Assembly (NCBI GenBank): GCA_937625935.1
Contig: OW569351.1
Span: 186,001-250,000 of the forward strand
Reading direction: 5' to 3'
Length of the DNA stretch: 64,000 bases
From: Tetramitus jugosus
Lineage: Eukaryota > Protista > Heterolobosea
A model generated the notes under the pieces. That model was not told where the DNA came from and made no database searches. It was given only the letters and a program-made list of their open reading frames with translations. Below, piece by piece: positions 8,120-11,739 of this stretch. Both the position numbers and the translations under genes were made by a program. Position 1 is the stretch's first letter, and every line of letters starts with the position of its first letter.

Positions 8120-8453
8120 CCAGCTCTTTCGTTGAATAGTGTTGTCTCTTTTGCAACAAAATCAATTTGTTGTAGGTGTTGTTCTAGAAGGGAATTTTTA
8201 AAGAGAGAGAAGAGTGGTGTGTCGTTTGGTTGTTGTGTGTTTGTTTTTTTCTCGTGTTCCATGTGCGCAAAAAAAATTGTTTATTAGTATCGAAAGTCGG
8301 TGTGTGGTGGTTGGTGCCCAAAGCAGGAGTTTTATTGCAAATTGAACCTTCCGATATGAGCTATGAATAGGCGATTGTCGGCAATAATTTCCGAAGTATC
8401 TTTTTTTCCGTGATTCTCAAGTGCGAGAAAGATCAAAAAACACAAAAGGCAAC

Positions 8454-10883
8454 ATGAGCTCAGAAGAGACGATCGGGAACATCCCTCATGGAGATACCAC
8501 CAGTTCTCAACCCATATATTTAGATTACAATGCAACAACTCCTTTGCATCCCAGTGTGGGTATGGCGATGCTTCCTTTTCTCTCGGGCACCTCTGATTCG
8601 TTGTTCGGAAATCCCAGTAGTTCTCACGTTTATGGGACAAAGGCCAGGCTCGTTGTGGAGAATGCAAGGTCACAAGTTGCTCAACTGATGTGTTGTCAAC
8701 CTGATGAAATTCTTTTCACTGGATGCGGCTCAGAGTCCAACAATTATGCCATCAAGGGATTGTTATTGAATTCAGAGATGAATCAAATGGAGCGAGAGCG
8801 TGGTCAGAAGAGACGCCATATTATTACATGCAAAACAGAACATGTGTCTGTTTTGGAGGTCTGCAGATTTATGGAGAAGGAGTGCGGATGTCGGGTGAGT
8901 TATCTCGATGTTGATTCAGAGGGATTTTTGAGATTGGATCAACTAAAGCAATGCCTGTCGAATGATACTCTGCTCGTGACCATTATGCATGCAAATAACG
9001 AAACGGGAACAATACAGCCTATTGAGCGCATTGGAGAGATATTGGATCAATATGAGCAGGACCATGGGATCAGAATTTTTTTGCATTGTGACGCATCACA
9101 GAGCATTGGAAAAGTACCTATTGCATTGTACGAACGGATGATACCCAAGAGTCGCTCTTTGCCCCAATATTCAAACTTTTCTCGTGTGGATTTATTGACT
9201 ATTTGTCCTCACAAGTTTTATGGACCCAAGGGAATTGGGGCACTCTTTATCCGTGCCGGTACGGTTGGCGGAAAATTGACCAAGCAGATCCATGGAGCCA
9301 ACCACGAGCGAAATATGAGAGCGGGAACAGAGAATGTGATTTTGATTGCTGGATTAGGTAAGGCATGCGAAGTGACGAATATAGAATTGTTTGATCGGAT
9401 TCAACATATGAAACACATGAGAGATCGATTGTATTCTGGTTTGGTAGAGAAGTTGGGCCAGCAGTTCATTACCATTAATGGAGCGCTAGATACTTCGAAG
9501 CGATTACCCAATACACTGAATGTTAGTTTTAAGCATGTTGCTTCAAATACTCTATTGGACGAACTGGGTGATCAAATAGCTGCAAGCGCTGGAGCCGCTT
9601 GCCATACAGATGATGTGACTATATCTCACGTTCTAGAATCCATGAATGTAGATAAAGACGTTTCCTTGAATGCTATCCGTTTAAGTACAGGAAGGCTGCT
9701 GAACGAAAAGGATGTGGACAAAGCGGTGTCTGTTATCTCATCAGCCGTAAAACGTCTACAACCAAAGAGTGTAGATGAATTACTTAGTGGGGAATGTGAA
9801 ATAGATATGAATCCTAACTCAATTCGATTGACGAGTATGACTCATGGTCTCGGATGTGGATGTAAAATTAGACCTCAGTCATTGGAAATGATTCTTCAGA
9901 AAATTCCTAAAACAAATGATCCCAATGTCTTAGTTGGCACAGAGACCAGTGATGATGCTGGTGTTTATAAACTGACTGATGATATTGCGACAGTGATGTC
10001 CGTAGACTTTTTCACCCCAATGGTGGACGATGCCAGACAGTTTGGTGCAATAGCTGCAACAAATGCACTCAGCGACATTTATGCTATGGGTGGTCGACCC
10101 TTAACTGCTTTGAATATCGTTGGATTCCCAGTTCGGAGATTACCACTCGTAGTATTACAAGAGATATTGTTGGGTGCCCAAGAGAAGTGCAAGGAGGCTG
10201 GCGTTTCTATTGTTGGTGGGCACTCAATTGAAGATTCAGAGATATTCTTTGGTCAATCAGTAACCGGTATTGTTCATCCAAACAAAATATGGAAGAATGA
10301 GGGATCTAAGCCTGGAGATGTAATTCTCTTATCAAAACCTATTGGTGTGGGCATTATAGCAACTGCAATGAAACGAAACTCTGTTGGCCAAGGTTCACAA
10401 ATGGGACAAGCAGCTGTTACCACAATGTCACAATTGAACAAATATGTCGCAGAACTACTGTTAGAGAAAGAGTACACTGTTACTGCATGTACTGACGTCA
10501 CAGGATTTGGACTTCTTGGTCATATGAAAGAGATGGTACAGTCAAATAATCATCTATCTTTTACTGTTTCTGCTTCCCAAGTCCCTATTATCGAGGGAGT
10601 CCAAGAATTAGCTCGTATTCCTAGTCTTGTTCCTGGCGGCACTCTAAACAATCAGTTGTTTGTTCATGACATTGTGCACTTTGCTGCTGAAATCTCAGAG
10701 ACAACTAAGATTATATTATGTGATGCTCAAACAAGTGGTGGTTTATTATTTACTGTACCTGTAGAACAGTATACCAAATTGCAACATGAGTTTGATCAAA
10801 GGGGTATATTTGTCAAAAAGATAGGTTACGTCGAGCAGAGAGTCAATTTTTCAGATAACAAACAGATCCAAGTGATTGAATAG
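8454..10883 (+). CDS. Selenocysteine lyase/NifS-like PLP enzyme fused to selenophosphate synthetase (SelD/SPS, Cys form)
   Basis: N-half: YLDYNATTP, FGNPSS, HANNETG, HCDASQSIGK, PHKFYGPKG, RAGTEN, SAGAACH. C-half from about 9826: RLTSMTHGLGCGCKI, SDDAGV, VDFFTP, NALSDIYAMGG, VGGHS, TDVTGFGLLGH, DAQTSGGLL. One uninterrupted frame. Confidence 0.95.
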   Translation: MSSEETIGNIPHGDTTSSQPIYLDYNATTPLHPSVGMAMLPFLSGTSDSLFGNPSSSHVYGTKARLVVENARSQVAQLMCCQPDEILFTGCGSESNNYAIKGLLLNSEMNQMERERGQKRRHIITCKTEHVSVLEVCRFMEKECGCRVSYLDVDSEGFLRLDQLKQCLSNDTLLVTIMHANNETGTIQPIERIGEILDQYEQDHGIRIFLHCDASQSIGKVPIALYERMIPKSRSLPQYSNFSRVDLLTICPHKFYGPKGIGALFIRAGTVGGKLTKQIHGANHERNMRAGTENVILIAGLGKACEVTNIELFDRIQHMKHMRDRLYSGLVEKLGQQFITINGALDTSKRLPNTLNVSFKHVASNTLLDELGDQIAASAGAACHTDDVTISHVLESMNVDKDVSLNAIRLSTGRLLNEKDVDKAVSVISSAVKRLQPKSVDELLSGECEIDMNPNSIRLTSMTHGLGCGCKIRPQSLEMILQKIPKTNDPNVLVGTETSDDAGVYKLTDDIATVMSVDFFTPMVDDARQFGAIAATNALSDIYAMGGRPLTALNIVGFPVRRLPLVVLQEILLGAQEKCKEAGVSIVGGHSIEDSEIFFGQSVTGIVHPNKIWKNEGSKPGDVILLSKPIGVGIIATAMKRNSVGQGSQMGQAAVTTMSQLNKYVAELLLEKEYTVTACTDVTGFGLLGHMKEMVQSNNHLSFTVSASQVPIIEGVQELARIPSLVPGGTLNNQLFVHDIVHFAAEISETTKIILCDAQTSGGLLFTVPVEQYTKLQHEFDQRGIFVKKIGYVEQRVNFSDNKQIQVIE

Positions 10884-10884
10884 C

Positions 10885-11739
10885 TCAAGTGCTTTCTGGC
10901 AATTTTATCCCCTCGGGCTTTGCATAAACAAGGCACCAAACATTGTTGTCTTCCTCCATCTTTCTGATATTGAGCATTGTTTTACAATACACCTCATGTT
11001 CCAGGCCAAAGTCGTTGTATACCATCTTGTTAGCCCCACTGCCCAACAATTGGTTCGTTCCGTTATGTTTGATCAATAACGGCTTATTCCCTCTCACTAC
11101 TTCTCCTTCATACTCGACTCGGTACTGTGGATTCATGTACTCACAGATCCAGCTTGATTGATTGTCATTGGCCACATCAACTGACACCTCCTGTAACTTG
11201 GATATGGGCGAAGAAGTGCTATGAGACACAAGCTGACTTCGTAAATAAAATGGACCTCCAAACTCAGGTATTGTAGACAAAACAAAGGATTGGCCGTAGT
11301 GCAGTACGTTAGACTCACCCAGAAATAGTTTATCCATATCATTATGCATTTTGGCTGGTTTTCCGATCATAAACACAGCTCGAGCCACGGGACCCTTTTG
11401 TTCTCTGGTCGTAACTCCAAATCTATCTCTCAAATGATGTAATTTGGTGTCCAAGTCAACACAGAGGAATGATTGCGTTTGTTGATTGAACAGCATAACT
11501 CTGTCTCCAAACTGGACTGAGTGAACGTCAGATATTCTCAATGGAGTTAATTTTGTTGGTTGGAGATGTTGATCGAACTTATTCTTCATAAGATTCGATG
11601 GTAGGAGCCCCTCTTTCTTCTGCTCTGCAAAGAATTTGAGTCTGGCTTCTTCTATCTCCAAGTCCTCTGACCAGTTACCAATACGAACTCTGGGATGATA
11701 ACAAGAGTGACCCATTAACTGTTGTGGGGTATAGTCCAT
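10885..11739 (-). CDS. CFAP161: Cilia- and flagella-associated protein 161 (C15orf26-like)
   Basis: YHPRVRIGNWSED, FGDRVML, LHYGQSF, RVEYEGEVV, IKHNGTNQLL, NDFGLEHEV and terminal NVW motifs. Confidence 0.85.
   Translation of the reverse strand: MDYTPQQLMGHSCYHPRVRIGNWSEDLEIEEARLKFFAEQKKEGLLPSNLMKNKFDQHLQPTKLTPLRISDVHSVQFGDRVMLFNQQTQSFLCVDLDTKLHHLRDRFGVTTREQKGPVARAVFMIGKPAKMHNDMDKLFLGESNVLHYGQSFVLSTIPEFGGPFYLRSQLVSHSTSSPISKLQEVSVDVANDNQSSWICEYMNPQYRVEYEGEVVRGNKPLLIKHNGTNQLLGSGANKMVYNDFGLEHEVYCKTMLNIRKMEEDNNVWCLVYAKPEGIKLPEST

Follow-up and report, generated by a model that had tools for sequence, protein, structure and literature searches.

We confirmed that a 64,000-nucleotide window of DNA from the soil amoeba Tetramitus jugosus (the whole stretch analysed here) contains a real and intact gene encoding a NifS-like enzyme and a Cys-containing SelD as one polypeptide. 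The product is likely a bifunctional enzyme of bacterial type, gained in already fused form by a heterolobosean ancestor and most probably feeding the eukaryotic Sec pathway. The gene, all parts of which lie on the plus strand, occupies a single uninterrupted frame in the open-reading-frame listing (8421..10883). From the first ATG, at 8454, the complete coding sequence (8454..10883) runs for 809 codons to a TAG stop (10881-10883), with no internal stop, frameshift or intron. The 809 aa protein, with an expected mass of ~89 kDa, has the Pfam matches Aminotran_5 (aa 21-423, E 5.5e-53), AIRS (500-607) and AIRS_C (619-796). An earlier note, made from the letters of the sequence, had described one intronless frame joining a class-V PLP enzyme, a short linker and a complete SelD, and the single frame and the Pfam and NCBIfam matches bear this out.

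The protein starts with an extension (aa 1-20, 8454..8513) that has no counterpart in the aligned bacterial fusions. It is polar and acidic, is predicted to be disordered (AF2 pLDDT <50 for aa 1-16) and by eye does not resemble a mitochondrial presequence, in agreement with the earlier suggestion that none is evident. The two domains are joined by a linker of 14 residues (aa 438-451, 9765..9806), which varies between homologues and is also predicted to be disordered (AF2 pLDDT <50 for aa 443-451); the string that spans it, QPKSVDELLSGECEIDMNPN, corresponds to aa 436-455. The AF2 model of the fusion has a pTM of 0.68, and its inter-domain geometry carries no confidence; the two parent enzymes are each dimeric.

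The C-terminal part (aa 452-809, 9807..10880) is a SelD, or selenide, water dikinase, in complete form. Its conserved residues and the curated cut-offs of the NCBIfam models selD TIGR00476 (366.5 bits, cut-off 125) and NF002098 (350.6 bits, cut-off 299) place it in the SelD family, and it is predicted to synthesize selenophosphate. It most resembles E. coli SelD (258 bits), whose Met1 aligns to Met452. In the alignment with E. coli SelD (3u0o), Cys468, Cys470 and Lys471 correspond to Cys17, Cys19 and Lys20, and Asp501, Asp518 and Asp541 to Asp51, Asp68 and Asp91, which we take to be ATP- and metal-binding residues. Cys468 and Lys471 are located in the Gly-rich N-terminal loop GLGCGCK (9846..9866), of which GCGCK spans aa 467-471; these two residues and the three Asp are invariant in 51 fusions. 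Since Cys468 occupies the Sec/Cys17 position, no UGA recoding is needed, as had been claimed.

The N-terminal part (aa 21-437, 8514..9764) is a class-V PLP domain (Pfam PF00266) of the NifS/IscS-like group I. Among solved relatives, it scored 262 bits with E. coli IscS, 239 with NFS1 and 207-210 with SCLY. Its scores lie below the equivalog cut-offs for NifS (TIGR03402, 367 against 530.75) and IscS (TIGR02006 and NF010611, 326 against 643 and 335 against 548), marking it as a distinct subfamily that is not orthologous to housekeeping NifS or IscS. Alignment with IscS equates His130 with H104, Lys254 with K206 (HK motif) and Cys383 with the Cys of SSGSAC, and all three are invariant in the 51 fusions. 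The PLP lysine, Lys254, is part of the stretch Cys251-Pro-His253-Lys254 (9204..9215). K220 (QSIGK) had been a candidate for this role and was ruled out by the same alignment; the equivalent of human SCLY Val256 is Cys251, not Ser217. An insertion of ~20 residues (9123..9182) is found at the same place in homologues P0001 and P0003 and in the Willaertia protein, and is missing from the bacterial fusions and homologue P0043 in the alignment.

His130, the conserved PLP-stacking His, is followed by Val131 (8841..8846), which takes the place of Asp146 in human SCLY and of Lys105 in IscS (IscS alignment and residue counts; PMC3266270; bioRxiv 2020.02.07.939272). Asp146 is the Sec-specificity determinant of animal SCLY (PMC3266270; bioRxiv 2020.02.07.939272), and human SCLY both required a Lys for cysteine desulfurase activity and needed nothing more to gain it (PMC3266270). 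Pro occupies this site in 47 of the 51 fusions and Asp in one. At the site of SCLY Val256, three residues before the PLP Lys, T. jugosus has Cys251, all bacterial fusions (44/44) have Ala and only Willaertia has Val. The mobile catalytic loop SAGAACH (aa 378-384, 9585..9605; AF2 pLDDT <50 for aa 382-386) contains Cys383, the predicted persulfide or selenopersulfide carrier, and His384. The latter is at the site of human SCLY His389, which directly follows Cys388 (PMC3266270), and a His is present there in 50 of the 51 fusions. The group-I consensus SSGSACTS (bioRxiv 2020.02.07.939272) and the T. jugosus SAGAACHT match at four of eight positions, and SCLY was not among the matches of a 40-residue catalytic-loop query against the PDB.

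The earlier label of selenocysteine lyase is thus not upheld, as the IscS and NFS1 scores exceed those of SCLY and the Sec-specificity Asp is missing; judging from these sequence features, this half does not belong to the animal-type Sec lyases. The loop had also been considered nearer to SCLY than to NFS1. This stands as regards the His after the catalytic Cys, but that His is common in stand-alone bacterial NifS-like genes away from selD. Of 55 stand-alone NifS-like loci with no selD alongside, 41 had the EHP...ACH active-site signature; this sample is biased by the search pattern, and the signature was rejected as proof of Sec specificity. Considering the Val in place of Asp and how common the signature is in stand-alone genes, any preference for Sec is putative and Cys is an equally possible substrate.

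The fusion design is not new. The earliest one described is that of Geobacter sp. FRC-32 (Zhang et al. 2008, PMC2398784). For the NifS-SPS fusions of Naegleria gruberi and Acanthamoeba castellanii, the explanation given was that a bacterial gene had been transferred when already fused (Mariotti et al. 2015 in Genome Res, PMC4561486). The earlier note had rightly mentioned such fusions in a few bacteria and amoeboid protists. Its description of the fusion as rare is not borne out, as fusions are abundant in uncultured bacteria. The best 120 matches of each of two word searches all had the three-domain architecture, mostly with ~730-760 aa and a few longer ones of eukaryote type; Willaertia magna, Naegleria fowleri and N. 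lovaniensis were among them. In GTDB, 25 of the 80 best loci were fusions, from at least 12 phyla. Bacterial fusions are now annotated as 'selenide, water dikinase SelD' or 'cysteine desulfurase NifS/selenium donor protein'.

Trees of the full-length protein, the NifS half and the SelD half each recovered one clade of seven eukaryote-type sequences (SH-aLRT 98-99) with the same inner topology, in which T. jugosus groups with Willaertia, Naegleria and environmental eukaryote sequences; the A. castellanii fusion was not among the sequences compared. In the outgroup-rooted NifS tree, this clade was nested in bacterial fusions, with the mitochondrial IscS of the host far outside. Separate phylogenies of the domains had been proposed as a check, and their congruence agrees with horizontal transfer of an already fused bacterial gene. 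The trees show that both halves share descent from a fused bacterial family.

The T. jugosus protein aligns end to end with bacterial NifS-SelD fusions, with the same domain order and with invariant motifs in common at the active sites (EH-x, HK, SAGAACH and GCxCK); identity is ~50% across 93-98% of the length. It is longer (809 aa versus ~736 aa) due to the N-terminal extension and two insertions, and it has Cys where the Geobacter FRC-32 fusion has Sec in SelD. It resembles the Naegleria and Acanthamoeba fusions in its bacterial-like character, its NifS-like N-terminal part, its C-terminal SelD, in which Cys takes the Sec position, and its selenoprotein-bearing host. However, its identity to the fusions of Willaertia and Naegleria is only 49-52%, it is intronless, whereas small introns were reported for the Naegleria and Acanthamoeba fusions (PMC4561486), and the PLP-stacking His is followed by Val instead of Pro. 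Animal SCLY and SEPHS2, and the T. brucei SCLY-SEPHS2 complex, share with it a group-I NifS-like fold, a mobile Cys loop, the His after the catalytic Cys and the proposed passage of Se from Sec to a flexible N-terminal SPS loop. In contrast, these are separate polypeptides, and SCLY Asp146 and Val256 are replaced by Val131 and Cys251 in the T. jugosus fusion, whose sequence is nearer to IscS. According to work cited in PMC4561486, E. coli IscS, CsdA or SufS with free Sec likewise support selenophosphate synthesis by SelD. Those partners are non-covalent and non-dedicated, unlike the covalently tethered ones of T. jugosus, whose NifS half has none of the IscS markers Lys105, Ser and Thr.

The fusion locus was the only SelD/AIRS gene detected in the 26-Mb genome with TIGR00476, PF00586 and a SelD-half protein search (E <= 1), a sole-copy statement that refers to one assembly of 56 contigs and a filtered first-look search. 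N. gruberi, in contrast, also has a methyltransferase-SPS that complements selD (Mariotti 2015 Supplement S2, PMC4561486). A genome search for the Sec machinery, advised in the earlier note, retrieved tRNA-Sec(TCA), SepSecS, eEFSec (420 bits against the human protein) and a PSTK candidate. The part concerning SECIS elements was uninformative, as the Rfam SECIS_1 model had zero matches in the whole genome and zero in controls too. A TGA within the SepSecS match was rejected as a Sec codon because of its location at the end of an exon-like segment. A glutathione peroxidase gene has a TGA at the catalytic site (NVASK*G), so that the selenoproteome previously proposed for the organism has at least one member, alongside tRNA-Sec, SepSecS and eEFSec. 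No separate SCLY was present among the class-V PLP matches of the genome: the match on contig C17 is a phosphoserine phosphatase-aminotransferase fusion, and the remaining ones are MOCOS, kynureninase, a PLP decarboxylase and an Aminotran_5/PP-loop fusion. Given the sole SelD/AIRS gene, the Sec machinery and the Sec-containing glutathione peroxidase, the fusion is probably the only selenophosphate source of the eukaryotic Sec pathway of its host.

We propose that an ancestor of the heterolobosean amoebae took up an already fused bacterial gene. The group-I NifS/IscS-like lyase would act on free selenocysteine (or cysteine) to release its Se (or S), and Se would be carried as a selenopersulfide on Cys383 of the mobile loop. 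With ATP, SelD would convert it to selenophosphate via the flexible Cys468/Lys471 loop, in a domain that begins just 14 residues past the end of the NifS domain. As the only selenophosphate synthetase found in the genome, the enzyme most likely feeds the ordinary eukaryotic pathway, in which PSTK, SepSecS, eEFSec and tRNA-Sec would lead to selenoproteins such as the glutathione peroxidase. A direct hand-over of Se from the NifS half to the SelD half is plausible. E. coli NifS-like proteins donate Se to SelD (Lacourciere et al. 2000, as cited in PMC4561486), and the T. brucei SCLY-SEPHS2 binary complex requires the N-terminal region of SEPHS2 (bioRxiv 2020.01.28.922716). We found no activity data on any NifS-SelD fusion in the literature searched, and we infer the expression of the fusion, its two activities, any preference for Sec over Cys and the intramolecular transfer.

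The strong similarity of the protein to bacterial ones could point to bacterial contamination or to an assembly that wrongly joined two adjacent genes, an artefact that is effectively refuted. The gene is a single open frame whose GC content (0.40-0.44) is in line with that of neighbouring genes, and its stop codon is 1 nt from that of a convergent CFAP161-like flagellar gene (10885..11739, minus strand), which rules out contamination and places the gene in eukaryotic DNA. An independent environmental contig (L102, 99.5% identical) contains the same junction and the same convergent neighbour, and all homologues among the matches listed are likewise fused. The contig of homologue P0003 carries IFT52/CFAP161, a eukaryotic context, and that of P0001 (65% identical) is mRNA-like, with an ORF at 123-2537 of 2583 nt and A13 at the end. 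Another reading, rather improbable, gives the fusion an auxiliary or detoxifying role, as may be the case in N. gruberi, with the main SPS of the host missing from the assembly. The two SPS genes of N. gruberi are indeed both fusions (Mariotti 2015 Supplement S2, PMC4561486), and the assembly is in 56 contigs, but the three independent searches converged on one locus and every other Sec-pathway gene sought was present in the same assembly. There is even less reason to expect that the selenophosphate serves a non-Sec use, such as tRNA selenouridine or a labile Se cofactor. Bacterial SelD has such uses too, as PMC2276186 indicates, and the gene is bacterial in origin. However, no SelU homologue was retrieved in the genome search, and a full eukaryotic Sec pathway with a Sec-containing glutathione peroxidase needs an SPS, of which the fusion is the only one found, making this use very improbable.

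The alternative with most weight concerns the N-terminal half, which might be an ordinary cysteine desulfurase, mobilising sulfur or serving as a generic carrier of persulfide or selenopersulfide, rather than a lyase that recycles selenocysteine. The fusion would then do no more than place a general chalcogen donor beside SelD, with Se coming mainly from selenide or from selenite reduction. Its top database matches are NifS/IscS rather than SCLY, Asp146 is not conserved, the active-site signature recurs in the stand-alone loci mentioned above and bacterial NifS-like enzymes use both Cys and Sec (PMC3266270). Nevertheless, we consider this unlikely. All but one of the 51 fusions have Pro or Val in place of the Lys that confers desulfurase activity. 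Where desulfurases have a PLP-contact Ser, the fusions have Ala, Cys or Val, and the catalytic Cys is followed by an SCLY-like His. Moreover, the fusion to SelD is kept in at least 12 bacterial phyla, and the host genome encodes a separate, canonical mitochondrial IscS. Beyond the preferred reading of a bifunctional enzyme feeding the Sec pathway, a bolder version is possible but doubtful. The acquired fusion may have displaced the ancestral eukaryotic SPS2, the methyltransferase-SPS (kept by Naegleria) and a separate Sec lyase, so that one chain of bacterial type would perform both Sec breakdown and selenophosphate synthesis for a eukaryotic SepSecS pathway. The NifS half would owe its selectivity for Sec to residues other than Asp: Pro or Val in the place of Asp146, Ala or Cys in that of Val256, and a His next to the catalytic Cys.

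A bacterial fused gene serving a eukaryotic Sec pathway has already been published for Naegleria and Acanthamoeba; what is added here is only a broader distribution, the sole-copy status in T. jugosus and the pattern of residues occupying the specificity positions. How selenophosphate synthetase is supplied with Se while free toxic selenide is avoided is, according to PMC11431864, still unclear, and a naturally tethered lyase and synthetase is a handy object for testing direct Se transfer. As the gene is intronless, has Cys instead of Sec, thus needing no recoding, and is apparently the only SPS of its host, it should be easy to express and genetically informative. If the displacement of the ancestral enzymes and the Sec selectivity of the NifS half were true, the T. 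jugosus fusion would provide a natural system in which to test direct selenium transfer within one chain.

The NifS-like/SelD fusion proposed in the earlier note is borne out by a single open frame on the forward strand (window 8421-10883), in which the first ATG, at 8454, opens a coding sequence of 809 residues ending in a TAG stop (10881-10883). Pfam domains Aminotran_5, AIRS and AIRS_C cover residues 21-423, 500-607 and 619-796, respectively. The NCBIfam selD model matched with 366 bits (cut-off 125), while the NifS (367 bits) and IscS (326-335 bits) equivalog models remained under their cut-offs. The linker, SAGAACH and GCGCK strings quoted in that note were all found in the protein. Since Met1 of Escherichia coli SelD pairs with Met452, the inter-domain linker comprises only residues 438-451. 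From the aligned sequences of 51 fusion proteins, AlphaFold2 gave a model with a mean pLDDT of 86 and a pTM of 0.68, in which low confidence was confined to the N-terminal extension (residues 1-16), the Cys loop (382-386), linker residues 443-451 and residues 272-291, which are conserved.

The gene does not stand out in its surroundings by GC content (0.44 and 0.40 in its two halves, 0.41-0.42 in its neighbours and 0.41 in the window), with the window at G000:C8:186001-250000 of an assembly of 26.35 Mb in 56 contigs. Downstream lies a convergent CFAP161-like flagellar gene. The two stop codons are 1 nt apart (window 10881-10887), so that each 3' UTR must overlap the coding region of the other gene. 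An independent environmental contig (L102) carries the same junction and the same neighbour, with 99.5% identity over 2005 nt.

Alignment to E. coli IscS equates His130 with the PLP-stacking H104 and Lys254, in an HK motif, with the PLP lysine K206, and identifies Cys383 as the loop cysteine. In the SelD half, alignment to 3u0o equates Cys468, Cys470 and Lys471 with Cys17, Cys19 and Lys20 of the E. coli protein, and Asp501, Asp518 and Asp541 with its Asp51, Asp68 and Asp91. All nine residues are invariant in the 51-fusion alignment.

Whether the NifS half is a selenocysteine lyase, as it had been labelled, is less clear. Three positions set Sec-specific human SCLY apart from non-specific desulfurases (Collins et al., PMC3266270; numbering confirmed from bioRxiv 2020.02.07.939272). 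Asp146 of SCLY, Lys in other group-I enzymes (IscS K105), is Val131 in the window protein; 43 of 44 bacterial fusions have Pro and one Asp, and among the seven eukaryote-type fusions the three of the window clade have Val and the remaining four Pro. Val256, Ser/Thr in other group-I enzymes (Ser in IscS), is replaced by Cys251, a residue shared by six of the seven eukaryote-type fusions (Val in Willaertia); all 44 bacterial fusions have Ala. His389, elsewhere Thr/Ala (Thr in IscS), is retained as His384 in all seven eukaryote-type and 43 of 44 bacterial fusions (Asp in the other). Judged by sequence, the NifS half resembles housekeeping desulfurases at none of the three sites, but agrees with SCLY at only one. 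His384 is its one SCLY-like residue there; Val131 and Cys251 speak against the label, as do the bit scores, in which IscS (262) and NFS1 (239) exceed SCLY (207-210). The EH-P...AC-H signature also occurred in 41 of 55 stand-alone NifS-like loci lacking selD within 3 kb, a sample biased by the search pattern. Taken together, these observations lead us to call the NifS half a distinct NifS/IscS-like subfamily, for which a Sec preference, though unproven, is plausible.

Two word searches retrieved thousands of related proteins, and all three domains were present in each of the best 120 from either search. Among these, bacterial matches were mostly ~736 residues long, with ~50% identity over 93-98% of the query. 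Among eukaryotes, the named matches came from Willaertia magna (49%), Naegleria fowleri and N. lovaniensis, and the closest relatives were the environmental proteins P0001 (65%) and P0003 (63%). The P0003 gene shares a eukaryotic contig of 35.6 kb with genes for IFT52, CFAP161 and guanylate cyclase; the P0001 contig (2583 nt, ORF 123-2537, A13 at its end) looks like an mRNA. The fusion had been thought rare. Bacteria have it far more often than assumed, with 25 fusions in the 80 best loci of a GTDB species-genome scan, from Zixibacteria, Bacteroidota, Calditrichota, Cloacimonadota, Planctomycetota, Ignavibacteriota, Lentisphaerota, Chloroflexota, Fidelibacterota, Myxococcota and KSB1, among others.

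Trees were inferred by maximum likelihood (IQ-TREE, LG+C20, quick search) from the full length and, as had been suggested, from each half separately. The seven eukaryote-type sequences formed one clade in all three (SH-aLRT 98-99), with the window protein, P0001 and P0003 set apart as a trio. Full-length and NifS-half sequences gave the same branching order, ((window trio), (Willaertia, (two Naegleria))), P0043, consistent with a heterolobosean source organism. An insertion after residue 223 occupies the same place in the trio and Willaertia. P0043 itself is a divergent 826-residue environmental fusion, sister to the heterolobosean clade, on 2.6 kb, transcript-like contigs of 52% GC (Logan, SRR32315873 and SRR32315890), and may represent another eukaryotic lineage with the fusion. 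Stand-alone NifS-like genes, together with the mitochondrial IscS of this genome, served to root the NifS-half tree. In it the eukaryote-type clade was nested within bacterial fusions, with mitochondrial IscS far outside; a closest bacterial group is suggested only tentatively by the full-length tree, in which Bacteroidota were nearest (support only 86). Protist NifS-SPS genes have been attributed to a fusion formed in bacteria and later transferred (PMC4561486), a conclusion that our trees reproduce and extend.

The Sec machinery expected by the earlier note was found in the genome: a tRNA-Sec with a TCA anticodon (78 bits; ARAGORN agreed), SepSecS split into three exon-like pieces (the TGA reported in its match is at a segment end) and eEFSec (420 bits to the human protein, with euk_SelB_III and eEFSec_4th domains). 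The only solved relatives of a second KTI12-family gene are PSTK. A selenoprotein is also encoded, a glutathione peroxidase with an in-frame TGA in the catalytic NVASK*G motif (VVNVASK*GLAAKNY; G000:C32:121522-121944, L109:1501-1626, minus strand), split by a short intron-like gap. SelU was absent from the genome search. Whole-genome searches with the selD model, the AIRS domain and the SelD half as protein query (E <= 1) found no second SelD/AIRS locus, and the fusion is therefore most likely the sole selenophosphate source for this eukaryotic-type Sec pathway. In contrast, N. gruberi has a methyltransferase-SPS beside its NifS-SPS, and the latter contains small introns (Mariotti Supplement S2), whereas the window fusion is intronless. 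In a filtered first look, the AIRS search also gave no PurM, PurL or ThiL-type gene, so that de novo purine synthesis may be missing in this amoeba, which is only a lead.

No separate SCLY was found among the class-V PLP genes of the genome, the others being a mitochondrial IscS, MOCOS, kynureninase and two fusions. The ORF of the canonical IscS/NFS1 (G000:C15, L010:1396-3093, minus strand; 645 bits to the IscS model) has ~165 additional N-terminal residues, much above the expected length of a mitochondrial presequence. One fusion, of 629 residues, pairs an HAD domain resembling phosphoserine phosphatase with a phosphoserine aminotransferase (SerC, 462 bits; G000:C17, L012:1462-3348, minus strand). 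The other joins a desulfurase-like class-V aminotransferase to a PP-loop ATPase (ATP_bind_3) in a 1244-residue open frame running past the locus edge (G000:C7:495983-499048, L013:646-3711, plus strand); it may be a second design coupling chalcogen donor and consumer, perhaps for tRNA thiolation. Elsewhere in the assembly, 18S rRNA genes occur only on two small separate contigs (C53 and C55), in alternating orientation at ~21-23 kb spacing. At 2117 nt they are long for eukaryotic 18S rRNA. Their arrangement looks similar to that of Naegleria, whose rDNA is on an extrachromosomal element.

NifS-like enzymes keep Se from Sec as a sulfoselenide on the mobile-loop Cys (PMC3266270). The binary complex of SCLY with SEPHS2 in Trypanosoma brucei, in which the PLP site is buried, depends on the N-terminal region of SEPHS2 (bioRxiv 2020.01.28.922716). 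The SelD N-terminal loop of the fusion begins 14 residues past the end of the NifS domain, which makes it geometrically reasonable that Se would be passed within the tethered chain from Cys383 to Cys468.

In line with the earlier note, NifS-SPS fusions have been published, from Geobacter FRC-32 (PMC2398784) and from N. gruberi and Acanthamoeba castellanii (PMC4561486); PMC6006210 also mentions one from a diplomonad. In the literature searched, we found none of the NifS-SelD fusions characterized biochemically. The window gene is a further case of this published type, in another heterolobosean, and what is added is incremental: the abundance in bacteria, its standing as the only SPS found, the intronless gene and a definite set of residues at the specificity positions. 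The NifS-SelD fusion remains a good but unsurprising object for experiments.
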